DNA of 63,873 nt, counting the filler, from Lenisia limosa (lineage: Eukaryota > Protista > Breviatea), in assembly GCA_001655205.1 (NCBI GenBank). It is 9 parts of 9 records of this genome, joined end to end, with 100 filler letters (N's around TTAATTAATTAA, not from the genome) between each part and the next. Parts side by side here need not be neighbours in the genome. Positions count along the whole stretch, not along the records: positions 32,123 to 45,144 come from LPNZ01003229.1; 8 more parts are not named here. One strand, given 5' to 3'. The notes beneath the pieces were generated by a model. That model had not been told where the DNA came from and did no database searches. It saw nothing but the letters and a program-made list of their open reading frames with translations. Both the position numbers and the translations under genes were made by a program. Positions 11,135 through 45,144 of this stretch are shown in pieces (position 1 is the first letter of the stretch; each line of letters begins with the position of its first letter).

Positions 11135-13428
11135 CTGGAGAACACCGACAACCATGCCAGCAAAGTAGGGCGCCCAGTAGACACGGCCAAGGTAGGGACG
11201 CTCGATGTCGTGGCGGCCTGAGAGGTTAANNNNNNNNNNNNNNNNNNNNNNNNNNNNNNNNNNNNNNNNNNNNNNNNNNNNNNNNNNNNNNNNNNNNNNN
11301 NNNNNNNNNNNNNNNNNNNNNNNNNNNNNNNNNNNNNNNNNNNNNNNNNNNNNNNNNNNNNNNNNNNNNNNNNNNNNNNNNAAAAAAAGACGATAAATCT
11401 TCAAAAATAATCGATATTGTACCGAAACCGAAGTGACTAAGTGTTTTTTTTAAAAGCAGGTTTGTACCAGATTCACACGTAATCTTCACTGAGCCCCAAA
11501 TCCAAGAATTCTAGCCACCATTCAAATATGCATCAATAATTCCCCTACCTCTAACATCAACCCTCCTTATTTGTTTATGGTTCCCTATGTATTAATTGGT
11601 TTCACTCGATTTCTCAGGTTTATTATTTCTCTTGTTCAAACCTCCCCACCCAAAAGTGCCCCCCCCCCCTCACATGCGTCAAGGTCCTCATGATACTCCA
11701 CTACATAGACCTCCAAGAAGTACACGATGCTGGCGCACATCGCAGCCATTCCAAGGCAGACCACGCGATAGGGAAGGTTGAAATACTGTGTTGTTAATTT
11801 AATGAATTCTGTGTCCATTTTGAAATACTGTGTTGTTAATTTAATGAATTCTGTATCCATATTGAAATACTGTGTTAATGAATTTTGAATCCATTTTGAA
11901 ACACTGTGCTGTTAATTTAATGAGTTCTGAATATTTGTTTTCAAATGCCGTAAAGAAAAACAGCCCGGTAACGAACCTGGTCAATACCCGGGTTCAGACG
12001 GATGGAAACGGGAAGGCCAGCCGAAATGAAGCCGGCGAGGCTCGGAGCGAGGTAGCCAAAAACGAGGGCACCGACAAGGCTGCCGGCAAGGACGTACAGC
12101 GAGTTTTGGACCCCACTTCCGATCTGTGCAAGGACTGGAGAGTAAAACGAAGGAAATTTTGAAGAATATTGGCGTAAAGGTACTAATCACGAACGAATAA
12201 TCTGTAGCTCCAAACAAACAAACAAAAAAACAAGTAACACTAAAACTCGACAAAACCCAGGTGACAAAAACAAGCCCAAACCAATCTTTGTAAAGTCCCA
12301 TCACCGCTCGATCACCCCAAAACGGGGGTGAAAATAACATTATAAAAGAAAAAGAAGAAGCCCAAAATCAACTCTGCTAGCTTAGTATTTGGGAAGCACA
12401 GTTAGTTTGACAGAAATGTACAAACAGCACAGTTTGAAATTGTGCCAAAATTTGCATTCAGAAAAACTGACCATGCCTTTCCACAGACAGAGAAAACAAA
12501 TATGAATAATGAGAGGCGTGAAGGGAGTTCGTAGGAGCTTGAATACCAAAAGCGAAAAAATAATAATTCGGATAAATTCAGCCGAAAATATTCTATGATT
12601 CTCGGACCAACAACAGATCAGCTGAATCAATCTCCCCTTAATAACCCACAAAACAGGACCACCACACGCAGTCTCAAATATCAGCAGCGATGACGTCATG
12701 CAAACAACAGCACAAGAAGCTTTAAGGTGGCTTCAAGATAGCTTCAATATTATCTGTATTAAACCCCCATTACCAGTGCCGGGACAAGCACCACAGACAG
12801 CCATGCCAAGACCAAGAAGAGAAGCGCCAAGAACAGTGGCCGGTACGCCGCGGGAGTTGTTCAACTCTTCAACACGGACTTTCAAGGCCATGGGTCTCAG
12901 ACTGGATGAGTAAGGAATGTTCAAGAATGCCAATCCATGACACAGGCGTTTGGAGGCGTTTGGTATGGTATTGCCCGCTGCTAAGACGACTGAACTTGTG
13001 TGGTGTGATTAGATATCAAGAGGAGAGTGGAGAACTTGAGGAAGTGATGGAAAGAGTAGATCACTACCCTCCGATTGGGCGGGGAAGTCGCTGCATGCAG
13101 CCCCTTACATTTTAATTGAGTCAAACAAGGTAAAGACAACCATTGAGGAGGCGACAGCACTGAGGAACATCTTCAACATCGGGAAATCCGTGAAGTTGAA
13201 CTACTTCTGTGAATTTGGAGTATGTCAAGTTAGATTCGCTTTAATTTAAATATTAATCGATAAAAGCCCGCCCTTTGCTTCATTCGCCTCACCTGGTTCA
13301 TAATAACCTGAAAAGGTCAGAAAGCAGATCACAAAAGTTGAAGGAACCAACCTGAGGAGCATAAACAGATCCTTTTTGGAGAACAAATCCGAATATCAGA
13401 CCCATAATGGCAGATGCCACCACAATAT
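11135..13428 (-). CDS. YeeE/YedE (TsuA-like) sulfur-compound transporter family membrane protein, spliced, 3' truncated, start uncertain
   Basis: Exons: AIMGLIFGFVLQKGSVYAPQ|VIMNQ|FNFTDFPMLKMFLSAVASSM, LGASLLGLGMAVCGACPGT|VLAQIGSG..LAGSLVGALVFG, YWAPYFAGMVVGVLQ. GACPGT and FGFVLQKG are YeeE/YedE motifs. Confidence 0.8.
11778..11936. repeat. 42-bp minisatellite (~4 units) overlapping a splice acceptor of the YeeE gene
   Basis: Unit TTGAAATACTGTGTTGTTAATTTAATGAATTCTGTGTCCATT starts at 11778, 11820 and 11862 (shortened), with a fourth degenerate copy. Confidence 0.9.
12182..12380 (+). repeat. Dispersed repeat family B (A-rich, mosaic, up to ~300 bp), intronic copy
   Basis: GGCGTAAAGGTACTAATCACGAACGAATAATCTG..GGTGACAAAAACA is near-identical to 22808-22915. 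GCCCAAAATCAACTCTG recurs at 58160. Confidence 0.8.
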
Positions 13429-13792
13429 CTTTTGTGGGGAAATACATCCTATTACTTCGACAACAAAAAAACTCAAATACAACAACCTAATGCAAGATAA
13501 ACAAAGGAGAGGGCCAAAAAAAAGCGACAAATAAATAAGTAATTGCAAGTGTGCCTTAATGATACCCCACGTCTGTCTAGTATAAAAATATCATTTTTAA
13601 AAAATTCCGTTTGTTTTTCGCTTCTTATAACTTCAAGTACACTATAAAGACGGATATACCATATTTTAGTACATTAGATTGCTTTAAGTTTCACTGTTCT
13701 TCCTCTCTCAAGTTGTAGAAGGCTATACCTTTTGTAAGAAGACGTTTGTCAATGTAGCAATTAGAAAGAGCGGCAAATAGTTCAAAACAATC

Positions 13793-15930
13793 ATGGGAAA
13801 GCGAACCACAAATTTCAAAAAGTTGGTCATGTCCAGTGTAGCGTTCTTCATCTTTCAGGGCTAAAAAGGAGGATTCTACACCCAATGTCTCTGAACCGGT
13901 CACTCCTGCAGCTGTGGAGGACCTCCCTCCCCTCCCCTCCTCCCATGCCCCTCTCTCAAGGAAAGAAATGGAGCGCAAGGACATTGAAAAGCGCAAGCAG
14001 AAGTCTGACAGCAAGCGAAAAAGCTCGGAGCGTGTTGTTCTCCAAACCACTGAGGAGGTCAGTTGCCATGTTCAGCTTCGTTTTGTTCGGTTATTTTTGT
14101 TTCAAGGAAAGCTTTATCTCACCTCCAACAGCTAAATAATGAGCTTCTGAGGGAGAGAAGAGAGAAGAAGGAACAGGAGCGACTTGAACGGTTGGTGATG
14201 ACTATGGGTGTCTTCCTACTTTATGACGTTGTTTGGTTGTTTTGTTCTTTAGCAGAGTTGTATGGTATGCCAACCTTGTTTTATTTTTCTCCACATCGCC
14301 AGTCGTATCAATAGTTTTATAGTGTAGACAGCTTGCTGCAAACAAACTCCCTTTTGGCCTCTTTTCATAATATCATTCCTTTTTTTTGCAGATGACACCC
14401 CTCTTAATCTCATGTCTGCATTTTCAGATACCGTAATAAGTCTTGACTGATTTCCTAAAGGAAAATCGGATTCTCACGATCAAGTCGGACTACAAGCGAT
14501 GACATGATATGATATATACTACGATATTCATAGCATTTGTATTCTATTTGACCAAATACACCTTTCTTTTTTTTCTCAATTTTATATATCAACACTATCT
14601 CATACAAGCATAATAATACACCGTAATTATTAGAGCTGCTTCTGACTTGGGCTTCACTTTGGTCAGAAAAAGACCGGACAATTTCGATGGTTTTCGAGCA
14701 TTTATCTAGAAATTCAATCTTTTTATGCAATTATTACGCCTTTTTTACACACCCTTTTCTGCAGCGTCATGAAGAACCTTGAGATGCAGAAGAAAGAAGA
14801 AGAGGTATCCACCCCCGCCGAAGACGTGGAAGAGGTCTCTGTATGGGGGGGGGGGCAGTCTGTTTGGTATGTGCAATATTTTTGATCTAAACGATCATGC
14901 GTGCTCCCAACCGACATATTTGTTTTGGGCTTTCAACGAGTGATTGGATGCGGTGCTGNNNNNNNNNNNNNNNNNNNNNNNNNNNNNNNNNNNNNNNNNN
15001 NNNNNNNNNNNNNNNNNNNNCTAGCGTCGACGGACTTCAGCGAATGTCAGTCTCTTTGATATGGCAGCATCCTCAACTAACTCCGTTGCAAAGAAACGTG
15101 GGGGGACTTGAAACCTAGGGGAGGGGGGTGAGTAATAACCTTGATGATAGGAACTCTATTTCAGGCAATTTAATTTCAAATTTTCACAACAATTTTCTTC
15201 ACAAAATTAATTACACTGAGCCCTTGCTAAAATCAACATTAGAGCAGTCCCAGTTTGTGTCTATGATAGTTCACCAAAAATATCACGTAACTTGACAGTT
15301 TTCATGCAACCCTCCCCCTCTCACGTTTTCAGCCGTTATGAACCGACCATCGCCTATCACGCCATCATCCACACGCTCAACGCCAAAGTCGTTCTCGCTT
15401 GCCTGGAAGTCCGTAACCGATGACACCGTGCAGATCACAGAGAAAATGGAGGAATCCGTGACGATCACGTGGGGTGGACGGCTTTGAACAGATACAACTT
15501 TATTTTTTTATTGTCATTGCTTTATATTTAACTTTATCATCAATTGCAATTCTCTTCGTTTTGCTCCCCGCCCCCCTCCCTGTGATGGGTGCTGCAGAAG
15601 TGACTGGCCTGGGCTTTGTTNNNNNNNNNNNNNNNNNNNNNNNNNNNNNNNNNNNNNNNNNNNNNNNNNNNNNNTAAATTTTCCATTATTCGGTTGGTGA
15701 TTAGTACCTTTACGCAAATATTCATCATCGAAATTTCCTTCGCTTTACCCCCCTCCCCCCAGATATGAAGAACGTTTGGCTTCAGCCGCAGCCTCGGCCT
15801 TGCGATTTGCCATTCAAACCCTGGTCAAGTCAGAGAACCCCCTCTACAACGCTGATAAGCCACCTTGCGTAAGCCTCTTGCCTTGGGTTTTTTTTATTAT
15901 TGCTATTCGAAGAAGTTTTTGTATTTATTA

Positions 15931-15966
<36 letters not shown>

Positions 15967-17076
15967 TTTTCATTTGACTGTTTCAGAAATCAACCTTCCC
16001 GATTTGTCTCATTGAGAAGGTGAGTGGGCGCTAAACTCAACTAAATGTCTCATACTCATTTGTAATAAAGATATCCCGAGCGACTGCGTGGAAAATAACC
16101 CAAAAGGTGAGATAAAAGAGAATCACTAGCATTTTATGCTATTACAGATATGTGTGTATTGAGTTGTAATTTGGCAATTAATTGTCAAACAATTTATAGC
16201 ACGGGGTCCTATTTACATATCATATACTTTATACTTTAATCCAACATATCTGAGAAGCGTGACTACGACTTCGGTCAGACAACATTAATAAAAATTTTTG
16301 CTTCTACATGTGATATGATTAGTCTAAGAGGACTAAAGAGAATGTAATAGCAGATTACGTTTTTTTTTTGTTTCTACATATGATATGATATATATTAGTA
16401 TTATTCTAGGAGTGCTAAAGATTATATAATAGCTACTGCATGAAACTGACGCTTTAGTTTTCAATTTTGTAATATTTACGATATTAGCCTGTGGAAGCAG
16501 CTGCACCTAGGAAGCCACAGAAATCATCCCCCATTGCCGCCCCCAGGTTTGCTTATCTGTGATAGCGTGATGGTGTGGACGCTTTCGGCCAGATACAAAG
16601 TTGTTTTTATTTCTCATCTATTCACCCAAAAACAGTATTTTACTCTCTCCTCTCTCTCTCTCTCTCTGTTTGATTTGAGGCTTTTTTTTTTCTTNNNNNN
16701 NNNNNNNNNNNNNNNNNNNNNNNNNNNNNNNNNNNNNNNNNNNNNNNNNNNNNNNNNNNNNNNNNNNNNNNNNNNNNNNNNNNNNNNNNNNNNNNNNNNN
16801 NNNNNNNNNNNNNNNNNNNNNNNNNNNNNNNNNNNNNNNNNNNNNNNNNNNNNNNNNNNNNNNNNNNNNNNNNNNNNNNNNNNNNNNNNNNNNNNNNNNN
16901 NNNNNNNNNNNNNNNNNNNTGTTTCATAAATTTTCCAATTTTACTCTCCCAGCGCACCCATTGCAATGGCACCTCGTATGGTGACTGTAGATCTTGCCAG
17001 TACTCCCGAGGACTGGGAAGAACACGTCATTGTTGAGGACGGATGGACTTCTTCGCTGCCTCCTTCGGGACTTATG
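13793..17076 (+). CDS. Hypothetical basic/coiled-coil protein, spliced, 3' truncated at the spacer
   Basis: Frame-consistent exons MGKRTTNFKK|AKKEDSTPNV..VVLQTTEE|LNNELLRERREKKEQERLER|..|YEERLASAAASALRFAIQTLVKSENP.. with canonical GT-AG. No family recognised. Confidence 0.55.
16563..16620 (+). repeat. Dispersed ~60-bp repeat family C (GTGGACGGC-TTCG-GCC hairpin plus T-rich tail)
   Basis: Shares GGTGTGGACG.YTTCGGCCAGATACAA..TTTTATTTCTCAT with copies at 15469, 19028, 21154, 24727, 51073 and 54413. Confidence 0.8.
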
Positions 17077-17107
17077 GTGCGGGTGGACCTGTATGTTAAT
17101 AAATATC

Positions 17108-17207
17108 NNNNNNNNNNNNNNNNNNNNNNNNNNNNNNNNNNNNNNNNNNNNTTAATTAATTAANNNNNNNNNNNNNNNNNNNNNNNNNNNNNNNNNNNNN
17201 NNNNNNN
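17108..17207. other. Artificial contig-join spacer
   Basis: 44N-TTAATTAATTAA-44N. Confidence 0.95.
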
Positions 17208-18794
17208 CTTCGAGCACGTGGGACGTCAGTGCCTTCATGTGACCCTATATTGTGAACCAAGTATCGCATATTTCTTGTATTGTTAGTCAGTTATTGTTGT
17301 GCGTGTTTCGAGTAAGTTATTTGTGTGACCCTGAGTGAGGCAACAGTGTATTGTGAGTAAAGGAAAAGAAGAAGAGGGAGGGGGTGCGTTGTGAGGTTAT
17401 ATTTCTATTGTGCGTAAGATATTAATGTGGTCTGTATTGTGAAGGGAGAGGAAGAGTTAATTGTAAGTAAGCTGCTGTGAATATTATGAGGAAGGTAGTG
17501 GATATTACTGTGAGGAAAGGAGGGGAAGAGCGTATTATGGGTAAGTTTGATATTAATGTAGTGTTGTGTATTGCGAGCGAGTTAGTTTCGTATTGATACT
17601 GTGATATAGTTAGTAGAGATTCCCTACGGTCCGAAAAAGACCTAAAATATCGATATTTTTCGAGGAAATATCGAGAAATTCAGTCTTTTTTGGGACCGTA
17701 GGGAAGCCTTAATTGTAAATAAGCTTGTAGTGAACAGTGACCAGGAGAGGTCTTGCCCGCTTTTACTTGGGAAATCACAGAGAAAATCGGTCAAAACATA
17801 TCCCGGTCACTGTATATCGCCAAAAAACACCACAATTATCACGAACCTCCTTCTGCAGGTTCGGCTTATTAGCAAGATTCTGGAGCATTTTGGCGACGGT
17901 GACAAGAGCCTTCTTTGCGGGCGTGCGCAGCGCATTTGCGTCAACTAGTCCGTAGGCGTTAGGGGTCACCACGGCCTGGGGGGTTATAAGGCGGGATGTA
18001 TGCTCAAAATATATAATATGATATGTAATATATCGATATTATATGTATTATACTAGTGAACAACATATGACTATGCCCACGGGGTTGATGTAGCGCAAAA
18101 GGAAAAACCCTCCAATTAGAGATGCGCAGTTCTCAGAAGTGGCCTCGGGGAACCGCCGCTGCATGCCCCCAAGGATTTCCGAGCAAATACTCCTGGGAAA
18201 ATTAGTGCAAATTAATTCTCCTGATCCTAAAATCAGAGCCAATACTCTGAGGGAAATATAGCATTTCATAGGTAGAAATCTAATCCTGAAATCAGAAGCA
18301 ATACTTCTGCGTACAACAATAACTAATGAGGCACTGGGGATTTTCAGAACGGCTATTAAAAAGATGAGAAGAAACCCCAGGGAAAGACGGGTGAAACTGG
18401 AGGAAGGAGCTTAAATAGTCGAAGGCAGGCAGGGAAGAAGTAGACTACTGAAAAACTTGAGAATCCCATATATTTACATGGGAATCCAATGTAATTATAT
18501 GGAAATCTGAAGAAATTCATGGGATTCAGAAATACTCCACAGGAATCCCAAGTCGATGCGCCGTAGTGAGCTAGGTATTTCACAAAATACTCCATATCCA
18601 CTAAGAAGAAGTTTATAAAATGAGAGTAGGAAGAAGTAAAGCTAAGTATTCATCATAAGAAGAAGTAAGCAAAACATCGAATCCCACTTTATTCCGAACG
18701 GCACTTCCGACAGTCCGGCAATGATGGCGTCAACAAACTCGGAAGTGAGTTTACGCAAGGTCTGCACGCGCACGTCGACTGTCGCCTTCACTTC
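17208..18794 (-). CDS. RasGAP domain protein, internal fragment
   Basis: TLRKLTSEFVDAIIAGLSEVPFGI|SICSEILGGMQRRFPEA..LIGGFFLLRYINP|AVVTPNAYGLV..KKALVTVAKMLQNLANKP..KE|GHMKAL carries the RasGAP FLR(F/Y)xxP and KxLQNLAN signatures. Confidence 0.88.
17614..17711. mobile_element. hAT-type MITE, subfamily B (TAGGGCTTCCCTACGGTCC)
   Basis: TIRs tagagattccctacggtcc / ggaccgtagggaagcctta around the TATCGA-rich core. Confidence 0.8.
17735..17812. mobile_element. Small Tc1/mariner-like MITE (CAGTGACC...GGTCACTG)
   Basis: Imperfect ~29-bp inverted termini followed by TA; a related copy lies at 25416-25484. Confidence 0.6.
18474..18568 (+). repeat. Dispersed repeat family D (~100 bp, ends TCCCAAGTCGATGCGCCRTAGTG)
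   Basis: Matches 45931-46029, plus a partial reverse copy near 31268-31320. Confidence 0.7.
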
Positions 18795-18894
18795 NNNNNN
18801 NNNNNNNNNNNNNNNNNNNNNNNNNNNNNNNNNNNNNNTTAATTAATTAANNNNNNNNNNNNNNNNNNNNNNNNNNNNNNNNNNNNNNNNNNNN
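18795..18894. other. Artificial contig-join spacer
   Basis: 44N-TTAATTAATTAA-44N. Confidence 0.95.
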
Positions 18895-19027
18895 AAAGTA
18901 CTCACCTTTTGCTCTCTCAATGAAAGTACTCACCTTTTGCTCTCTCAATGAAAGAGCGGTACCTTTTGTTCTCTCAACATGTGTGTGTATAAAATACATA
19001 TTATACTGTTATTCAATATCTCCTATA

Positions 19028-19086
19028 AGCGTGGTGTGGACGGCTTCGGCCATATATACAACCTTGTTTTTTACTTCTCATTGCTA
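19028..19086 (+). repeat. Repeat family C copy with a perfect GGC-TTCG-GCC hairpin
   Basis: AGCGTGGTGTGGACGGCTTCGGCCATATATACAACCTTG..TTCTCATTGCTA. Confidence 0.8.
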
Positions 19087-19214
19087 TAATATATATTTTT
19101 ACATTTAATAGTTTGAGGTGGCATTATGTATTCTTATATTTCCCTGGATTTATTTACTATATGTCTTGCTCTCGTTATTTGCACCCGATCCGAAAAGATT
19201 ATTTACACTGACAG

Positions 19215-20347
19215 GACGCCCAAGGACCCCTCGTCACACACCCGGTTCTTCACGACGACAATCGCCTAGTGTTGGGGGTGATATTCGGATGATGTGATGG
19301 TAGGGTTTCACTTCGGTTCGAAAAAGAAAAATATCGGTAGTTTTCGAGGATTTATCGAGAAATCCTGTCATAATTTGAACTGAAGTGAAGCCCTATGCGA
19401 TGGATCGGTTCGGCTCGATGTTTCCTTTTCCAACTTTCATCCTTATTTCCTATTTCTCGCAATATGCTCGCGGTCCTAAATTAGGTCATTAATTGTTATT
19501 TTGAGTTTTATAGCCGCAGAAACCAATTTTTAGCCCAGTTTTCATGAAGTATGAGTTCCTTTGATCATACCAATTGCATTGGACTTGTTCCTTAGATACA
19601 TTGCTCTGTTTATTTGTTCCAACATACCTATTGCGATTTGCTTGATCACGTGATCGATCCAGGTCCGAGCCGCCCATATTGACGCCCGAATACAGGACGC
19701 CCGGAAGCTGGTTGCCTCAACTTCAAAGTCCCCCCTGGATAAAAGCAATGCGGTAGGCGGCAGGGAAGAGAATGACTTAGGATGGTGCTAAGTTGTGCCC
19801 CTGTGTGCTACCCAATTGCTTAGCTAGCGGAGTTGATTCGTACGTACCCCCGTTGGAGTGATGGGATGTTTGCTTTGTTGTTATCAACCCTCGTGTATTG
19901 TGCCAGCAGAGTGAATTTTCGGCTTTTTTTGTTTCGTAATTTTTCAATTTTACGCCAGTTTCATCGAAGTTTCCTTCGTTTTACTCCACCCCTTNNNNNN
20001 NNNNNNNNNNNNNNNNNNNNNNNNNNNNNNNNNNNNNNNNNNNNNNNNNNNNNNNNNNNNNNNNNNNNNNNNNNNNNNNNNNNNNNNNNNNNNNNNNNNN
20101 NNNNNNNNNNNNNNNNNNNNNNNNNNNNNNNNNNNNNNNNNNNNNNNNNNNNNNNNNNNNNNNNNNNNNNNNNATGGTTAGGCTGGTCAACGCCAAATTC
20201 GGCCACGATCAAACAGATCATCAAGTAATAATTGGATTGGTAATATCATTGAAATGTTAGTTGTATTTCTTCACATTATGATACTAACGGCTGTAAATGT
20301 GTTTCTTATGTTCCAGGTATAATCTCCCGCCGCCATCAATGCGCTAA
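19215..20347 (+). CDS. 3' exons of an unidentified protein
   Basis: GC-richer blocks bounded by AG/GT: DAQGPLVTHPVLHDDNRL, VRAAHIDARIQDARKL, GWSTPNSATIKQII|KYNLPPPSMR*. Reading frames not independently confirmed. Confidence 0.35.
19301..19395. mobile_element. hAT-type MITE, subfamily A
   Basis: TIRs tagggtttcacttcgg / gaagtgaagcccta; 8-bp flanks TGTGATGG / TGCGATGG (7/8). Confidence 0.88.
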
Positions 20348-33962: not shown

Positions 33963-36900
33963 ATGCCCGCTGAAAATGTCAAGGTACGTCACCGTCTTCA
34001 CTGAGCTCCTTTCTTTTTCAAATGAAATTTCCGTGATCTAAATTTAACCATTATATATGAATAATGCTTCTTTTTTTTCTTTTCTGCTAGACAGCACATT
34101 AATTGGTCTTTTCCTCCTTGTCTGATTTGAGATCCCAAAACACTAGTTCAACTTTCCGCAGGTGTACGTTAGGTGTCGGCCAATGTCATCCACAGAAAAG
34201 AAGGCAAAATATGCAAAGTTGGAGGAAACTTGTTTCAAGAGTTTCTAAGATTGCTTTTTATCCAAAGCTGAAGCCTTTGCATCTTACTCCCTAGGATTGT
34301 GAAGATCAACATGCAATCCGGGCAAATATCTTTGATGAATCCCGAAGATGAATCCAAGCCACCTAAGAACTTCACCTTTGATTGTGTATTTGATGATAAG
34401 TTGGTGATAAAGCTTTTATGCGGAGAAAACAATAGAGTCAATCAAAGCTGGGCTCTAACACTTCAGTGTCACTCAACTTGATGTATACGACGCTTTAGCT
34501 CGCCCCATTGTTCGTGACACTCTTGGTGGTTACAATGGTGAATGGGCATGATTGGATTATTATTGGGCAATATATTGGTTGCAGAATAACTGTTTAGGTA
34601 CTATATTTGCCTACGGGCAAACAGGAACTGGTAAAACGTTTACTATGGAGGTTTGTTTTATTCTGTTTTTGTTGAGGGCGCAGTTTAAATCTCATTGTAT
34701 TTGCAGGGTGTCCATTCAAACCCAGTACTTCACGGTATTATTCCCAACGCATTCAATCATGTCTTTGCAGATGTTGAGAACAACTCCTCTGACAGGGTGA
34801 GAGAGTCTGCGTGTTGGTGCGTCATGAAGCGCCTTCTATACTCATAATCATATAGAACGTTTTTTTTTTATTATTTGATATCATATGCTCTTGTTACTCT
34901 CTTATCGTCAAGCAATACCTGGTCCGGGCGTCTTATCTGGAAATCTACAATGAAGAAGTGAGAGATCTTTTGTCAAAAACCTACACCAAAAAATTGCAGC
35001 TTCGCGAACACCCTGAAAGAGGTATGGTCCGTTATTGCAAACCAATTCAAGGGCACGGTGTTATTATCCTTGCAGTTTTAGGGCATTAAATCACTCTCAT
35101 CATCCAGGTATATTTGTACAGGATCTATCTTCTCATGTTGTGAAAAGCGTTGAGGAAATCGACAGATTGATGCAACAAGGAAAGAGCAATCGTGTTGTTG
35201 GAACCACCAAAATGAATCTTGAGTCATCCAGGTCCCATTCAATCTTTACCATCACCATCGAAACATCTGAGGTGAGAAACAATTCTACAGCCCCCCCCCC
35301 CCACTCCAGTCTGTAGTGGAATTGATACCTAATCTTACGAAATCATACTGACATGAATTATTTCCCCTTGTGTCACCTTGGTGGCTTCTACCAATAATGG
35401 TATTTATGTTTAAATCCACAAACCACACTTTTACTCATTGCTCCGTAGACAGGAACGGACGGCGAGGTTCATATTAAAATGGGCAAGTTGAACCTGGTAG
35501 ATTTAGCAGGGTCGGAGCGGCAAGGAAAGACTGGAGCTGAGGTGAGGGGCACCAGCGTTTCACAGATAGAATATTATGTTATCATATAGTTTGACCATAA
35601 AGTAGTATGTGTTTAATATATAAGGTAGAATATACGAATAATATGATCTGATAATTTTTTATTTGTGTGGCATTTCAAGAGGGGTATCTTTACCTCGGCC
35701 AGGGTCTCCGAGCCAAAGAGGGCATCAACATCAATCTGTCTCTTACCGCCCTGGGAAACGTTATTAGCGCGCTAGTTGATGGAAAGACTACTCATGTCCC
35801 TTACCGTGACTCTAAACTCACTCGCTTGCTTCAAGGTGGGAATCCTTCAGTAGTTATTTCTCCCATTTTGAGCTTTTCATCTTGGTATGTGTATCTTTTT
35901 GAATTCGACCAGTCACCCAGTTTAACCCTAACCAGACTCTCTCGGAGGAAACTCCAAAACTGCCATGGTTGCCAACATTGGTCCTGCAGACTATAACTTT
36001 GATGAAACTATTTCAACTCTTAGGTAGGGTGACCTTTTGTTATTTCTGTGGTTGTCTTTTTTTTTATTAAAACTTTGTTATAATAATATATCATATAGTA
36101 TCATATTGCAAATTGAAAAGAGACACATATTGTAACCCAACGTTTACCCTCTCAGGTACGCAAACAGAGCCAAGAACATCCAAAATAAAGCCAAGATTAA
36201 CGAAGATCCTAAAGACGCTCTCCTTCGTGAATATCAAGTGGGCCAAGTAATTCAAATAATAAGTTTCACCATGACTGTCTTTGTTAACTTAGAAAGAAAT
36301 AAATAAGAAAAAGTACACTAAAAGAAACCAAATCTAAAGGGACTTGAAAAAAAGGGGGGGTTCAATCTCCTTATACCTTTTAGGAAGAAATTGAAATCCT
36401 GAAGAAGCAGCTGGAAATGGCTGAGGCCGGCATTGACTGGACGCCTGAGGACGGAAGTGATGACGACGATGATGATGAGTCTGAAGAAGAAGGCTCTGAA
36501 GGTTGGAATGGGTATTTTGATTGTTACCACAGTATCTGGAACACGTTTTCTACTTTGTTAACATAACGTCACAATTACTCTCTATGTGGTTTGCTTATGA
36601 GAAGATTCGGGAAAATTTCCTTTACTCGCTTTCATTATATCAGATGATATGTTGTTTCCTGTGTGCTCATTGTATCCTCCCCAGAATCCGAAGAGGATGG
36701 TGAAGACACTTTGGTCATGGACAAGAAGGGAAGAATGGTCCGAAAAAGCGTGATAAAAAAACGCAAGGAGAAGAGGAAGAGGAAGAAGGTTGGTTTTCAA
36801 ATTCAATCACCCCTCCCCCCTCAACACAATTGCATTGAATGGTTGAGGTATTCCTATTTATCTCACATTTCCCACCCCCAGGAAACTGGATTAAGCAATT

Positions 36901-39900
36901 CAATGCGTTTTGAGATGAGTGCGGAAGCAGAGGCTCAGCATGAAAAAATGAAAGAGGAGGTAGTGTCTTGTTTTTATTGCATCACACTCGAATGGTATTT
37001 CTTCAATCATTCACCATCGTTAGATGGAGCGGCAGGAGAAGGAAAGGGATCTTGCTGAACACCAGTTATCACAAAAGGAGTCTGATGTTCTCAAAAGGAA
37101 ACAAGCAGCTGAGCGTATTGGGGGCGGAGGGGTCGAGAATACTGCCATGTTTGTTTATCAATCTTGTACTATTAGTAGTGTAACTAGTTTAGGTTTAAAA
37201 AGTGAACTGGCAGTTCTTCAAGGAAATCTCATCCAAGGTGGAGAGAGCATCATTGATAGGGTGAGGAGTAGGGCTTTACTTCGGTTCGAAAAATACCGAT
37301 AAAATATCGATAGTTTTTCGAAAAATTATCGAGAAATCCAGTCATTTTTCGAACCGAAGTGAAGCCCGAGTGAGGAGGCGCAATGGATGCAAACATTAAG
37401 TTAACTGCTGCATCTTTTATCTGTTTAATCTCCGACCAGAAAAACGTCGAATTTTCCACATCTCTCCCATTCCGCATCACCTATTATGATATTTATATAC
37501 TAGTGAATTTGTATTAATATATAGTTATTCTCTTTTATATAATAATACGAAATGCATATTTGATCCTTTAGGCCCAGCGACAAGAAGAGGAGATTCGCGA
37601 GAAGGAAGCGTTGTTGGCTGAAAAACTTGTTTGTGGAGAAACTGCCTTATCAGTATCTGTCAATTCATTCACGCCACCAGAGGGCGGAAAAGGCCATGGA
37701 GATGGAGCTTGTTGAGCAGCGTGACATTCAGTTCGATTTGGAGTCGCAATTCACGTCCATACAGGTAAGGAAGAATGTATTGTGTTCCCACTTGCTGTAA
37801 CGGGATAGTGCTTGTTGGGGGATATGCTGTCTGTGAGTTCACTCTTTTAGGAAGAAGCAGAAGTCAAGACCCGGAAATTGAGGAAGGTAGGTTCGAGGCC
37901 TTTCTCTCCATTTTCCTTTCTGTGTGGGGATAAAACTGGTTCTCAGGGGTAGGCCGCCAACAACGCTGTCTCCAGCGTTAATTATACATATCATATACAT
38001 TGAGTATGATATCTTGTAATGTATTCTTAATAAAATTTACCCCCTTCCCCACCGTTCCACTACCTTGATATTTAACCTCTCCTTTTCCCCCAAAAAGAGA
38101 TTCTTTTTGCTACCTCTCCTAACCTCCACCCTTTCAGCTTGTGGAGAAGCTTGATGCGGCAGGCTACGAAATTGAGGACTTGGTCTCTGAGTTTCAACGC
38201 GTGAGGAATGGAGTCTTAATAAATGAATCAAATTTCAATATTTTAAGTGTAAACTGCTTGCTTTTGGTTGGAGGTCTTGTTTTATTCATGAAGGAACGTG
38301 AAGACATGCATGATCAAATCCGAGACTTAGAAATGGATGTGGCTCTCAAAAAGGTATCAGGCGTCTGCGCGACACTGACTTAACAGGGGGTTGTTTACAT
38401 ATGGTATTGTGATCATTTGACTCTGCAGATGATCATTGAAGCATTCATTCCCCCACGTGACGTGGCGCTGGTGCAGGAACGCCTCATTTGGGAGGAAGAT
38501 TCTCAGGTACTTTGAAATTGTCATTTCTACTAATTTCTGTTTTTGTGACATGCTAGTAGATTCTTGCTATGGGTGCTTGACTTATGTCTTTAGAATTGGC
38601 AATATGCACCCCCACAGGATGTCAAAAAAGTTCAAATGTAAGGTCAAATATCTTCAACTCTTCATACTATAATATGTATTTCACACTAGTTTCTTGAACA
38701 TAAGTGAAGATATTGATGTGATAATTTCAGAACGTGGCTCGGATTTTTGTTCATTTTTTCTCATAATGGCGGATATTGAACTTGATTTACGCCAAAGCTT
38801 GGGGTCTTTCATTGAAGTAATGGGTAGATATGACAAAAAAGTTTTTCGTTTCAAAGAAGGCGTCTTAGAACAATTTTCTTAGAGCATCCGATGCAAATTC
38901 TGAATTGCCACCCTGCTTTAAGCATTTATCTCAACAGAGACCGGCCTGCCTCGGCACTCGGTTTGGTGTATCCTACTTCGTATGCCTCTTTAGAGGAGAT
39001 TGCACTCGGAAACCAGAACCCGCGTTTCATGGTTGGGCTACAATGCACAAGCGTCATATTGAAGATATCAAATTCTGCCTTCTGGTTTTCTTCGTTTTTT
39101 ACTTTGGTTCAGATCAACAACGTTCAACAGATGGAAGTTGAGCTGCCTGCTCCAACCACAAAGGATTACCATGGCCCTCATGTTTCCCAAAGGTTCCAAG
39201 TATGAAACCTTAATCATTCACTGACAGTTTTTTTTTGAATTGCATTTTTTAAAAACCCTTTCATCTATGTAGAGTGCCCTAGAGGATGCCTTAAGAGAAG
39301 AACCGGATAGTATGGTGGAAGTTAGGTGAGCTGGGTATAAAGAATAACAAAGGGGTTTCTTGAAGGCATGGATATTCAACATGTTTTATCCGTAAGTACA
39401 ATAATTGTAAATAATCCTCATATTGTAGTTCTGTGGAACAGACAACTGCTCCTTCAGTTGAAGGTCTCAGAAGAGCTCAAGATGGTATGGCGCCACCTTA
39501 TGCTTAACTTTGTTGTCGTATTAGATGTAGTATATACTAGTAGTAGAGCTTCCCTTTCGGTTTCAAAAAAGACTGAATTCTCGATAAATCCTCGTTAAAT
39601 ATCGATATTTCTTCAGTCTTTTGGAACCGAAAGTGAAGCTCTAACTAGTTGTACCTATGATGAGTTCTGAAATCCTTTCTTTACACACATAGCGCTCTTT
39701 GACGCACCAAAACGGCACTCCAGACCCTCAACTGCAGGACGGTAGGGGGGGGGGTATTTATGAAACAAAAAAAAAACCCAAATCATCTCTGTTGGCTGAC
39801 AACACACAAGGGTTGATAACAGCAAAACAAACAAAGCCCAAGCCAAAAGAGATGGGGTAAAGTATATATTTTGTCAAGTGATATCATATCCTTTTCATGG

Positions 39901-40232
39901 GTGCCTTTTGGCTAGCCTTCTTTTTGTAAGTTTAAAAACGCATTTATGACCACGTCACCACGGTCACCTTGTTAGTGTTTTGAATTTTGTAGTTAGTTGC
40001 GCGGTTAATCAATTATTAGAAGATTCATAAACAACGAATTAGTGTTTCCGTCACCTACTTGGCTTTTTCATAGATACACAATTATAGTATTTGTCGTCAA
40101 ATTCCTTCTTTCATCTCCCACAGAAGGAGACCTCCAAGTGCCGGCGGCAGAGCACCAGAGGCCGAGCCGGCTAAACCGGTACAGAACTTCCCGAGTTCCC
40201 GAGGCCTTGTGTCTCGGACTGGAAGGAAGTAA
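33963..40232 (+). CDS. Kinesin-2 motor subunit (KIF3/FLA8-FLA10 class, intraflagellar transport), spliced
   Basis: Motor domain: [72 protein letters not shown]|[36 protein letters not shown]3-type stalk and tail: [40 protein letters not shown]. Confidence 0.93.
37269..37369. mobile_element. hAT-type MITE at the 5' end of a kinesin-2 intron
   Basis: Perfect 8-bp TSD GTGAGGAG at 37261-37268 and 37370-37377. Confidence 0.92.
39544..39643. mobile_element. hAT-type MITE
   Basis: TIRs tagagctt / aagctcta; flanks ACTAGTAG / ACTAGTTG (7/8). Confidence 0.9.
39755..39845 (+). repeat. Repeat family B copy
   Basis: TTTATGAAACAAAAAAAAAACCCAAATCATCTCTGTTGGCTGACAACACACAAGGGTTGATAACAGC; cf. 51560 and 58140. 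Confidence 0.8.
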
Positions 40233-40765
40233 AACTAAATTTGGGGCTATTTTGTGTTTCTGATTTGATCTTCTCTTTTTGTTTTTGTTTTTTATTGATA
40301 TTTTTGTGTATTCAAATTCCAGAGTTTGCTGTTGTGGTGTGTCAGCTGTTCCACTCTGGGCAATTTCTGGGGGGGGGGGGATTNNNNNNNNNNNNNNNNN
40401 NNNNNNNNNNNNNNNNNNNNNNNNNNNNNNNNNNNNNNNNNNNNNNNNNNNNNNNNNNNNNNNNNNNNNNNNNNNNNNNNNTCAACAACTCAGCAACCCA
40501 GCCTGGAATACCTAAATTTGACTTAAATTTCAAGTCCCTCAAGCCGCATTTCGAAATTAGAATGATTTTAAATTGACTGAATCCCTGGAGTGCCACCACA
40601 AATCACAATCACCACAATCCTTCTCTTATATTGAGTGACACAAAGGAACTTAAATCTGTTTATAATTTCTAGAGTTAGCTTTCTGGTCAAGCAGTTGTTT
40701 TTTTTTGTAGAACGCCTTTTTCCATGTAATAACACTATCAATAAGAGTTACATCATGTTGTTTTA

Positions 40766-43700
40766 ATGGTAAGGTTATATTTGCATTTTTTTTGAGACGC
40801 GTCCTTTTGTTGACGTCAACTAGGGCTGCGGTAGCAGCAAGACGACATCACCACAAGCAACAGAACCAGTTGAAACAGTTCGTGAGCCGACCAACCCGCC
40901 TGGAGAAACAGGCAGTCCTCGCCCCTCGGGGCAGGGTTCGCCAAGCACGCCTCCTTCTATCCACAGTCCTTCTGAAGAGAAGATCAAGACTCCAAGTCAT
41001 AACGATATGCAAGCCCAGACTTCACAATCTGCTATGTCCCAAAGACATTCCTCGTCAAACGCTTCCCTCCCCTCAAGAAGATCACGAAACCCTAGCCAGA
41101 CCTCCCTCGATGCCCAAGCCAATTTGGGCGCTCCTAGTCCCGAGTTTGCCCTTCATCAGATGCCCTCATTTGCGTTCCCAGACTACCAAGATGGTGGGGA
41201 TACATTTCATGCTTTGTCTATTCCGTGAGCGTTTTTCTTCTCTTTTTTTTGCATTTTTTTCCATTCTTTTTGCTCACAGCTAATACATTTTGTTTAATGG
41301 AGCTTTAAGAGCCATCACTGCGTCTCATAATATTTCAGGTGCAAACGGAGACGTCTTCGAATGGTTCCACCATGAGACTGAAGTGGGGGTTGGGGTTTTG
41401 CTTTTTCTTCTTCTTTTGACTGAAGGGACTTTCACTTCCTAATAGCAGCCCAAGAAGCCTTTTTATTTGTTTTTATCATCATTGGCTTATTCGGCTTTAA
41501 CTTACGCGTTTGCCTATATGTACTTGATAAGATTTATTATTGATGTCTGCGGCTTCCAAAAGGCAACCTGGAGGAAAATTTCACCCTTCATATTATGGAA
41601 TATCATAGACAATGGATCTTCATGCTCCATTAAACATATTGTGTAATTTCACCCTGCAGCTCAAAGACTACAAGACTTACGTGGCCTCGAACGGCTTCCG
41701 ATACATTGTCGACGAGGACAAGCTGGAATGGGTAGCCTTCCCTGAAGATTGGCTTGTATGGGGGGAGGGGGAGCGATACACTCTCGTGTGTGGGTGTAGT
41801 ATGTATCTGCAGAGCTTCACTTCGGTTCGAAAAAGACTGCATTTCTCGATACTCCTCGGAAGCTATCGATATTCCACTGGTGTTTTTTTTTTTGATCCGA
41901 AGTGAAGCCCTAGGCCTTTCAATTAAAACAAGTCCATATCAGATTATTTTTTGGTTATAATCTTTGCAGCTTGAAGGCGTATTCCGCCCGGCGCCGGAGC
42001 TAATGATGGCAGAAGACAACAACTACGTTTTCGAGACCTTTGTCCTAACCGACGGCACTCTTTTGACGACACATCTCACGGATGAAGGAGTCCGCTATTA
42101 CTGCGATTGGGACACGTGGGCAAGTTGCGATTGCTTTCATCTGGTTATTCTTGGTTTCTTGACCTTTTTTATATATTTATTTTCTTTTTGTTACAAGTAC
42201 AGGCAAAACTGGACACCCATGCCTGAAGATTGGGAGGGACACGTGCTTGATGAAGAAAACGATGATGCTGTAAGAGGACCTCTTTCTGTTGTTATTGGGT
42301 ATTTTCTTTCTCTGGGAGAGTCTTCTTGAACTTGCAAGTTTTGTTCTTGGAATATGAAACATCCCTGACCTTCAGGTATCTCTTGGAGACAACCCTCGAA
42401 TCGGCTCTTTTGTTGATCCGAATAATGACAAAACCTATGTTGTATGAGGGGTGTAGGTTTTCAGGTGGGTTTTCTCTGTTGTTATAATAAACCCTTGTGT
42501 CAGCCAGCAGAGTTGATTTGAGTGTTTTTTTTGTTTCATAAATTTTCCTATTTTACCCCCCCCCCCCCNNNNNNNNNNNNNNNNNNNNNNNNNNNNNNNN
42601 NNNNNNNNNNNNNNNNNNNNNNNNNNNNNNNNNNNNNNNNNNACGTATGTGGCTGAAGAAGTGGTTGAAGTCAAATACTTCTGTGATGAGGACGAAGGAG
42701 AATGGCTCCCATTCCCCAAGTAAGTAGGGGCTATCCACAAGAGAGGGGCCTTTTTAGGCATTCGTGAGTCTGATACACCAGGGAATGGATGACGGAGGAA
42801 GAGTTGATCCAAAGAAAGGGTGCAGCAGCCATTCTTGGAGATGAAGTTGCTGATCGAGCAGAAATGGTGAGTTTGGAAGAAGACGATTGATTTGGTTCTG
42901 CTGGGGTGCTATATGATGAAGTATACTAGCCCAATTCACTCCAACAGGTCCAAAGCCTTCGAGATAAGGTACACACACTCGAGAAAGTAGTCTCAACGTT
43001 CAACGAATATAATGTGGTAAGTAAGTAAGTCACTGCCATAAAGGGAGGGACTGTGCCATACCCAGCATAATACAAGCAAACTATTCTCAATGCTAGGGCT
43101 TCCAAACGGTCCCAAAAGACCTCAATTCTCATGTGTCCATTTTAACCCTCCCCCCAGGACCAGATGAAACATGATTTGGAGGCGCTGCGTGAGCGCGAAA
43201 AGAAGCTGTATGGTGAAAACGCGAGCCTTGAACGACAACTCATTGATGTGGGGGGAGGGTGGATAAATCCTCGAAAACTATCGATATTTTACCGGTATTT
43301 TTCGAACCGAAGTGAAGCCCAAGGGATACTATCATTTATTCTCCTTCCTTTTTGTTTCAAAGCACCATTTGACATGACAGACCCGGGCTGACTTGGAAAC
43401 CACGCGGCAAAGAGCCGAGGATATGGCAATGGAACTCGAAATTGGTGGGAATCTGGCAGTAAAGTCGTATTTCTAGCAGTAAAGTCGGATTTCTAACGTT
43501 CCAGCTGAGGAAACGGCTGCTAATGAGCGACAAATGGAAACTCGAATTAAACAGCTTGAAGAGGAAAACTCTAGACTTCGCGAATCAGGTGGTGATAAGT
43601 TCAAGGAGGTATGCTTGCGGTTTGCCGCCTAACGTGGTGTTGCACTTGGACCAGGCTGATCTCCCTAGGTCAGTAAGGCGAAAGACAAGCAGCTGGCTCA

Positions 43701-45036
43701 GGCTAAGGCGAAACTGGTATGTATATTTATTCTTAAGAAAATAGTCTCTATGGTGATACACTAAGAGAAATTCAAATAACAACTAATTCCTTCTGAAAAA
43801 TGCACTTTACCTCTTGCCTTAGGTTGCACTCCACATGAGACTAAAGAAGTCCTCAACCGAATCTGATAATCTCTCGGCCACTTTCAAGTCTCGTCTTCAG
43901 ACCCTCTCTGAGCAAGTCAGCCAAATGAGCCCGATATTACCTTTTGCCGTGTTTCATACATGTAACTACTCCAGTAATAAAAATCCATCCCTTACGATTA
44001 ACAACTTAAATAAACCATCTTGGGGGGGGGGGGGNNNNNNNNNNNNNNNNNNNNNNNNNNNNNNNNNNNNNNNNNNNNNNNNNNNNNNNNNNNNNNNNNN
44101 NNNNNNNNNNNNNNNNNNNNNNNNNNNNNNNNNNNNNNNNNNNNNNNNNNNNNNNNNNNNNNNNNNNNNNNNNNNNNNNNNNNNNNNTTAATGGTATCCC
44201 TATGTATTTATTTGTTTCCCAGATTTTTAATGTATATTATGTCTCTTGTTCCAAAAAAAAGTTTACAGTTTAGTTTCTGGAGTGGCACAGCTCCAAAAGG
44301 CAGTGGCTAAAATGGCCTCAACCTACAACCATGAGCTGGATGAGTACAAGGCAAGATATCGCAAGGAAAGGTGGGAAACGAAGAAGGGAAATCTCTTGTC
44401 CTCCTCATACTTCGTATGTCTTCTACTTCTCTTCTTCTATGATTTAGGGCTTCCCTACAAAAATCATTATTTATCGAAAATTTATCGAGATATTTGGTCT
44501 TTTGTGGGACCGTCAGGAAGCCCTCATGATCATTGTTTCTCAGCTTCTGATATTTCAGTCTTCAGCGCAAGGATCTATTCAACAAAATCCAGGAGCTTCG
44601 AGGAAATATCCGTATGCTTGGTTTTCCTGATGTTGAAAATGGTACTGGCGATCTTACCCCCCCCCCCCCCNNNNNNNNNNNNNNNNNNNNNNNNNNNNNN
44701 NNNNNNNNNNNNNNNNNNNNNNNNNNNNNNNNNNNNNNNNNNNNNNNNNNNNNACCCAAACATGCAACTTGCAGTCTCCACACGTGATGAAGACCAAGAA
44801 GTTGTCATTAAGTATGCTAGTAAAGTCCTTTTTCGGGACTTAGAAAGATGATAATCTATCTGGAACTGATATGCGATACGATTCATGATATACGACTTTT
44901 AACGGAGGAAATAACTTCTATTGCTCTTTTTTTTTTGTGTTCAGTCCAGTTTATTGTTTTGATCACTCCAATCAGGCATGGTAAAACAACGAAGACTATT
45001 GAGTTTGATGGTGTTTTCGGTACTGCTGCTGGCCAG
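40766..45036 (+). CDS. Kinesin-14 (C-terminal motor) with N-terminal MGCGSSK motif, aromatic repeats and coiled coil; 3' truncated at the spacer
   Basis: ATG|gtaagg..tag|GGC TGC GGT AGC AGC AAG, then a long coiled coil, the kinesin-14 neck ARYRKESLQRKDLFNKIQELRGNIR, and the motor start KTIEFDGVFG. The link between N-terminus and motor rests on phase-consistent exon stitching across two N gaps. Confidence 0.8.
41810..41912. mobile_element. hAT-type MITE, subfamily A
   Basis: cagagcttcacttcggttcg...ccgaagtgaagcccta. Confidence 0.82.
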
Positions 45037-45144
45037 GTGAGGGGGGGGGGTATCTTATGATCGAAGTATTCTTTGAGTTTCACTTCGGTTAAAAAAAACC
45101 GGTAAAATATCGATAGTTTTCGAGAATTTATCGAGAAATTCGAC

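Follow-up and report, generated by a model that had tools for sequence, protein, structure and literature searches.

A kinesin-14 gene of Lenisia limosa whose predicted product begins with a candidate dual-acylation motif

Can a minus-end-type motor be fastened to a membrane by fatty acids on its own N-terminus? The question is raised by a gene in a 63,873-nucleotide (nt) stretch of DNA from the breviate Lenisia limosa (assembly GCA_001655205.1), hereafter the window, in which nine parts of nine records are joined end to end. The gene lies on the + strand of the part taken from LPNZ01003229.1 (32123-45144). An earlier note, made from the sequence alone, proposed that a first exon ending in ATG is spliced to an exon encoding GCGSSK, that the same exon chain leads to a kinesin-14 neck and motor, and that the resulting MGCGSSK start is a signal for myristoylation plus palmitoylation. 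We found a single gene with about 31 exons, which encodes a kinesin-14 of ~880 amino acids (aa; ~880 codons by the sum of exon lengths). On balance we favour reading its product as a membrane-tethered minus-end kinesin-14, composed of a dual-lipid N-terminus, an orphan Trp-rich domain, a stalk, a neck and a C-terminal motor. The architecture encoded by the exons is real and unusual, whilst the functional reading, which rests on seven residues, is plausible.

The start of the protein was considered at the level of DNA and RNA. The ATG at 40766-40768 (+) directly adjoins a GTAAGG donor, and exon 2 opens at 40824 with GGC TGC GGT AGC AGC AAG ACG, read as G C G S S K T. The expected count of ATGGT in 300 nt of this DNA is 0.32, which is so high that a splice guess from the sequence alone is weak without an RNA contig. 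Such a contig is present in X1, a polyA-RNA run from the same study as the DNA. Letters 76-449 of its record 2 (458 nt) are placed on 40823-41196. The bin 40634-40822 has a depth of 2.99, the value given by 75 of its 189 bases covered at 7.52 (7.52 x 75/189), and coverage is zero in the bin upstream of it. The first 75 letters of record 2 thus lie within 40634-40822, separated by a gap from exon 2. The aligned piece starts one base early, at the G of 40823, indicating that the RNA base before GGCTGC is a G. The only GT donor that is preceded by G and keeps all 75 letters in the bin is ATG/GTAAGG, so exon 1 spans at least 40694-40768. Its 5' limit is the end of the RNA contig and not a mapped transcription start. 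Other donors for exon 1 than that at 40769 were rejected, as they either lack the preceding G or place letters in the zero-depth bin. The glycine at position 2 of the predicted protein is therefore supported by an RNA contig in which ATG is joined to GGC.

The reading frame was set by the exons that follow. Exon 2 is open in two frames when open reading frames (ORFs) are called. Loose ends at 41196 and 41338 place the end of exon 2 at 41193 and join it to 41339, and the 44-nt exon 3 leads into exon 4, whose single open frame reads LKDYKTYVASNGFRYIVDEDKLEWVAFPEDWL. Spliced together, exons 3 and 4 fix the frame, so 40824 is the first base of a codon. The alternative frame of exon 2 (ORF 40792-41283, RAAVAARRHHH...) is ruled out for the same reason. 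In the genome the codon just upstream of GGC in this frame is the TAG of the intron 1 acceptor. In the spliced leader there is an in-frame TAA at 40742-40744, seven codons before the ATG. With a spliced ATG and an upstream in-frame stop, the N-terminus predicted from the mRNA is MGCGSSK.

The next in-frame ATG, at 41007, is residue 63 of the model. The main protein could instead begin at this methionine, or on another 5' exon in the dominant isoform, either because of the two upstream AUGs or because transcription starts downstream of exon 1. The leader does give some grounds for this, since it packs two upstream ORFs (uORFs) into 75 nt and has a T at position -3 of the main AUG, and the junction is covered by a single RNA contig of depth 7.5. 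However, the spliced ATG is in frame and no stop precedes exon 2, which would lead scanning ribosomes to initiate there. From Gly2 to the internal methionine all 61 codons are open (P = 0.038 by chance), with the same S/P/T-rich composition as the residues downstream. The layout of the leader also favours re-initiation at the main AUG: the first uORF is ATG TAA at 40724 and the second is ATG TTG TTT TAA at 40755-40766, the stop of which overlaps the main start as TAATG, an arrangement associated with termination-reinitiation. A start elsewhere is improbable, and we retain MGCGSSK as the N-terminus.

We also checked whether this N-terminus belongs to the same gene as the motor. All borders of exons 1-20 are GT-AG and the frame is unbroken throughout. 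Record 3 (489 nt) comprises 13 nt of exon 2, exons 3-7 and 56 nt of exon 8, whilst record 4 (716 nt) comprises 3 nt of exon 10, exons 11-19 and ~6 nt of exon 20. Parts of the gene masked by runs of N in the window were read in L001, a 19,224-nt contig (NODE_674 of ENA assembly ERZ3820729) with the same sequence as the window piece and free of N. This contig was reached by looking up P0001, an ORF call that reads through exon 5, intron 5 and exon 6; intron 5 is 87 nt long, in frame and stop-free. The length of record 4 matches both of the exons hidden by N at exactly their L001 lengths. It could still be supposed that the MGCGSSK exon is a separate short gene and that the kinesin begins further downstream, since no RNA contig bridges 42713-43090. 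Against this, records 2 and 3 overlap at the joint of exons 2 and 3, each extending into the exon of the other, by 13 loose letters on one side and 9 on the other. Exons 1-20 run in one frame with GT-AG borders, and the uncovered gap of ~380 nt holds two in-frame exons, leaving no room for a gene end and a promoter. Two separate genes are thus very improbable. Both structural proposals of the earlier note hold: the splice of an ATG exon to GCGSSK is borne out by record 2 and the upstream in-frame stop, and the continuous chain from MGCGSSK to a kinesin-14 neck and motor by three RNA contigs, the frame and L001.

The 20-exon chain leads to the neck, RKDLFNKIQELRGNIRVYCRVR, near residue 545, so that ~545 residues lie ahead of the motor. 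In L001 the neck runs across exons 18 and 19 as ...YKARYRKESLQRKDLFNKIQELRGNI followed by RVYCRVRALNTREDPNMQLAVSTRDEDQEVVIK. It stands directly N-terminal of strand beta-1 (RKDLFNKIQELRGNI, then RVYCRVRA) and fits ..N.[IV].[ED]L[KR]GNIRV[FY]CR[VI]R. Domain, PDB and database searches were run exon by exon and not on the joined protein. A 22-residue neck query matched the Pfam family Microtub_bd (E 1.1e-4), and against the whole PDB 12 of its 12 matches were necks of Ncd or Kar3, at an E of 0.13 for a query of only 22 aa. The motor opens in exons 19 and 20 (44671-45036) and runs off the end of the window piece; the rest of it is found in L001, where the gene continues at 13060-15132 with nine more exons after exon 20. 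These contain the motor motifs GQ/TGAGKTYTM, NAHSSRSHS and LVDLAGSER, and eight of the L001 motor exons match PF00225 in order, covering positions 58-324 of 327 (E 1e-4 to 1e-13). Beyond the last motor exon 21 codons (VRNIVVGPAKSHALPPGLPKK) remain before a stop at L001 15130-15132. The motor is thus complete and C-terminal. With a PF00225 motor in this position and a kinesin-14 neck, the predicted protein is a member of the kinesin superfamily and of kinesin-14. Taken singly, the motor exons have PDB matches of about the same quality to kinesin-1, KIFC3, Kar3 and KCBP, which does not separate kinesin-14A from kinesin-14B or, for the exons of the motor core, even from kinesin-1.

The tail ahead of the neck is less familiar. 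Residues 2 to ~124 are rich in S, P, T and Q, have no basic cluster and gave no Pfam match, and the linker of ~120 aa that follows GCGSSK is predicted to be disordered. Exons 3-9 (41339-42866; approximately residues 125-300) encode a tryptophan-rich repeat domain. Its motif, [YF]-x-x-D-[EW]-D-x-x-[EN]-W-x-x-[FM]-P-[EK]-[DE]-W, occurs in three clear copies (GFRYIVDEDKLEWVAFPEDW, GVRYYCDWDTQNWTPMPEDW and VKYFCDEDEGEWLPFPKEW) and one partial copy (GDVFEWFHHE). Judged by their sequence, exons 9-17 would add a coiled-coil stalk of ~240 aa. No Pfam family was found in exons 2-6 and 8-10 at E values up to 10, and in the same search MyTH4 and FERM were not found in these tail exons. Pfam likewise gave no OCRE or WW match in the exons of the window.

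The Trp-rich domain has one distant relative among 1.84 billion representative proteins. A HMMER search with exons 5 and 6, taken as the stop-free stretch 41970-42269, matched only its own ORF call P0001 and the protein P0002 (E 1.9e-4, 36% identity). P0002 is a hypothetical protein of 325 aa on a 4,044-nt contig of JGI metagenome 3300059473; it starts MGNGAMKESKGSK and consists of an EF-hand pair followed by the same repeats. Its match to OCRE (PF17780) is weak (E 0.14, 12.6 bits against a cut-off of 24.7). Between the repeat halves P0002 carries a hydrophobic insert, placed in the alignment where the kinesin gene has intron 5; it may be an intron that the gene caller failed to remove. AlphaFold2 run on P0002 without an alignment gave no usable fold (mean predicted local distance difference test score 41), and ESM Atlas look-alikes for the Trp-rich domain all fell below 0.9 and were uninformative. 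P0001 and the P0002 domain, used as queries in word searches, retrieved nothing but themselves, and scans of JGI metagenome contigs with exon 2 and with the domain alignment A2 gave no match. A single relative in 1.8 billion proteins indicates that the source organism is poorly sampled.

We then asked what the N-terminus itself might do. MGCGSSKTTS matches the regular expression of PROSITE PS00008, G-{EDRKHPFYW}-x(2)-[STAGCN]-{P}, and Cys3, Ser6 and Lys7 are all present. MGCxxSK starts are known from Lyn, Yes, Hck and plant CBLs. The proposed fit to the dual-acylation consensus is thus upheld by the PS00008 match together with Cys3, and Cys3 would be available for palmitoylation as a candidate SH4-type site. 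No basic cluster lies close by, so the protein would need the palmitate to bind membrane stably, as true dual-acylated proteins do. Acylation and membrane anchoring are predictions from these residues and their context.

A rather unlikely alternative, though the least unlikely of those we considered, is that MGCGSSK is the true start and the motif is fortuitous or only partly used, so that the protein is not acylated or is myristoylated only. The lipid would then be a weak or regulated switch, or a protein-protein contact, and not a stable anchor in the membrane. Cargo or microtubules would be bound by the linker and the Trp-rich domain, as is usual for the tails of kinesin-14. PS00008 is not a strict pattern, and elsewhere in the tail lies a domain of folded appearance to which cargo could bind. 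No orthologue that would show the motif to be conserved came up in the databases searched, and P0002, which starts MGNGAMK, has the Gly2 and fails PS00008 at position 6. Yet Gly2, Cys3, Ser6 and Lys7 together closely match proven dual-acylated starts, a combination that, by a rough estimate from residue frequencies, would turn up in far fewer than 1 in 1000 random N-termini. In addition, the gene keeps a first coding exon of a single codon, dedicated to it, which places the glycine at position 2. We continue to prefer the membrane-tethered kinesin-14. Several points nonetheless tell against it. The motif is only seven residues long and was seen in a single gene, and no orthologue that would attest its conservation came up in the protein or metagenome databases searched. 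The first junction comes from one contig (depth ~7.5) of one small RNA library, the first 75 letters of which were placed by depth and not by reading letters. Two upstream AUGs precede the start, with T at -3 of the main AUG. From 42713 to 43090 (the end of exon 8, exon 9 and exon 10) there is no RNA contig, and the link is made by frame and splice sites.

In the mechanism we propose, the initiator methionine would be removed and Gly2 N-myristoylated during translation. The weakly membrane-bound protein would then be S-palmitoylated on Cys3 by a membrane acyltransferase, giving a stable anchor, a step that may be likened to Src-family SH4 domains, G-alpha subunits, RP2 and calflagins. A coiled-coil dimer would then bear a pair of dual lipid anchors at the tip of its tail, separated from the motors by ~540 residues. 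Many such non-processive motors in one membrane could work together, either pulling the membrane (of a vesicle or organelle, or a flagellar or cortical membrane) towards minus ends or holding microtubules and sliding them against it. The Trp-rich domain would probably contribute a protein partner or regulation. We put forward more tentatively, as possible though doubtful, that this is the first natural cytoskeletal motor covalently anchored in a membrane by myristate and palmitate, and a team-working, dynein-independent minus-end hauler of vesicles or of flagellar or cortical membrane, belonging to a flagellate lineage that has been little sampled.

Table 1. Exons and other features of the kinesin-14 gene, in positions of the window.
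Feature	Position	Strand	Content	Support
Exon 1	40694-40768	+	At least 75 nt of leader, with the start ATG at its 3' end	75 letters placed by depth arithmetic
Intron 1	40769-40823	+	55 nt, phase 0, GTAAGG...CAACTAG, directly after the ATG	
Exon 2	40824-41193	+	GCGSSK and ~120 residues; donor GTGGGG at 41194	
Exon 3	41339-41382	+		RNA record 3
Exon 4	41660-41755	+		RNA record 3
Exon 5	41970-42115	+		RNA record 3
Exon 6	42203-42269	+		RNA record 3
Exon 7	42376-42441	+		RNA record 3
Exon 8	42643-42719	+		RNA record 3 (56 nt of the exon); acceptor seen in L001
Exon 9	42782-42866	+		Frame and splice sites; join of exons 8 and 9 predicted only
Exon 10	42948-43016	+		RNA record 4 (3 nt only)
Exon 11	43158-43247	+		RNA record 4
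Exon 12	43381-43444	+		RNA record 4
Exon 13	43505-43608	+		RNA record 4
Exon 14	43669-43716	+		RNA record 4
Exon 15	43823-43915	+		RNA record 4
Exon 16	61 nt, hidden in N-run 44035-44187	+	L001 reads VVHLKTQLKDTVSTVSTMNE	RNA record 4
Exon 17	44274-44370	+		RNA record 4
Exon 18	44559-44611	+	Kinesin-14 neck, (S)LQRKDLFNKIQELRGNI	RNA record 4
Exon 19	97 nt, begins inside N-run 44671-44753, ends 44811	+	L001 reads RVYCRVRALNTRED then PNMQLAVSTRDEDQEVVIK	RNA record 4
Exon 20	44976-45036	+	HGKTTKTIEFDGVFGTAAGQ	RNA record 4 (~6 nt)
Exons 10-17	42948-44370	+	Charged, heptad-like; putative coiled-coil stalk	

Some properties of the locus were recorded beside the gene model. The N-runs at 40384-40481, 42569-42642, 44035-44187 and 44671-44753 each lie beside 12-14 G or C in a row, and the real lengths in L001 (about 86, 46, 185 and 42 nt) are unlike those of the runs. 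Two coding exons are hidden by them (exon 16 and the start of exon 19), and exon 8 starts precisely where the run at 42569-42642 stops. Among the first 20 donors, seven (in introns from 41194 to 44371) read GTGGGG, GTGGGA or GTGGGC, several of them followed by runs of G; this preference for GTGGG is unusual and might help to place the organism. Introns and intergenic DNA also contain short repeats (39500-39877, 41768-41956, 42524-42568, 43262-43320 and 45113-45144). Their summed contig depth in the DNA run is 3,000 to 100,000, against ~30 for unique sequence, and they cause many false joints. With a recurring translated signature (..RFEKYR.. / ..SEALG..), they look like a very high-copy family of miniature transposons.

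The gene upstream, on the same strand (34300-40232, +), is a KIF3-like kinesin-2 with human KIF3B as its best PDB match (E 5.5e-15, ~62% identity over 55 aa). Its last exon ends in a TAA near 40232, ~460 nt before exon 1 of the kinesin-14. The presence of a kinesin-2 gene indicates that the organism probably builds cilia or flagella, and the tandem placement of two motor genes may be chance. Downstream of the kinesin-14, the minus strand of L001 at 15340-19224 holds pieces of ORF with hydrophobic transporter-like stretches such as GRILGGAFAGSITACQASVADV, which are probably the next gene.

How does this kinesin compare with known systems? It has the C-terminal motor and the neck of the kinesin-14A proteins Ncd (Drosophila), Kar3 (yeast) and KIFC1/HSET (human), together with a putative coiled-coil stalk like theirs, and its neck aligns residue for residue with that of Ncd (SLQRKDLFNKIQELRGNIR in this protein, NMERKELHNTVMDLRGNIRV in Ncd). 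The tails of Ncd, Kar3 and KIFC1/HSET bind microtubules or partner proteins. Unlike these, the tail described here starts with a dual-acylation motif and contains an orphan Trp-rich domain outside any Pfam family. The animal kinesin-14B proteins KIFC3 and KIFC2 are minus-end-type motors linked to the Golgi, apical vesicles or endosomal organelles, and are thought to reach membranes through adaptors. KIFC3 is among the PDB matches to the motor exons, whilst Pfam and protein searches of the tail exons detected no similarity to the tails of KIFC3 or KIFC2. A literature search on KIFC3 and myristoylation found nothing relevant.

Starts in M-G-C are shared by Src-family SH4 domains (Lck, Fyn, Lyn), G-alpha i/o, RP2, trypanosome calflagin/FCaBP and plant CBL1. 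In such dual-acylated starts Gly2 receives the myristate and Cys3 the palmitate; position 6 is a small residue and position 7 is often Lys. Dual acylation of G2 and C3 is an established device for membrane and cilium targeting, and it is what sends RP2 and FCaBP to the membrane of the cilium or flagellum (PMC6678300). None of the dual-acylated proteins listed here is a cytoskeletal motor, whereas in L. limosa the motif heads a kinesin of ~880 aa. In line with the earlier note, which knew of no description of this architecture, we found no acylated kinesin in the literature searched, which lay outside most subscription journals and included no proteome-wide survey of N-termini.

Motors are usually linked to membranes by adaptors or by lipid-binding domains (PH, PX, FERM). 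Direct contact with membrane lipids, without an adaptor, is made by the kinesin-3 proteins KIF1A/Unc104, through a PH domain, and KIF16B, through a PX domain. Those are plus-end motors with folded lipid-binding domains, whereas the kinesin-14 described here is of the minus-end type with a putative covalent anchor.

A functional precedent is moss KCBP, whose tail binds acidic-lipid liposomes and carries them to minus ends (PMC5461021). Liposomes, nuclei and chloroplasts are all moved to minus ends by this kinesin, and an artificial tether, His-tagged KCBP on Ni-lipid, also gave minus-end liposome motility (PMC5461021). Kinesin-14 dimers alone are non-processive, and teams of them on a bilayer move the bilayer (PMC5461021). 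The idea in the earlier note that a kinesin-14 could pull membrane directly is therefore not new (PMC5461021). The KCBP link is non-covalent and made to acidic lipids by a tail with MyTH4 and FERM domains, whereas the link proposed here would be made by covalent N-terminal fatty acids. Relative both to KCBP and to the PH- and PX-domain kinesins, that anchor would be what is new. If the reading is true, no link between motor and cargo could be simpler than that of a kinesin which holds to the bilayer through fatty acids of its own. Such a kinesin would also be a natural counterpart of the artificial lipid-tethered kinesin-14 teams that act as long-range transporters, and would show another route to minus-end membrane transport without dynein.

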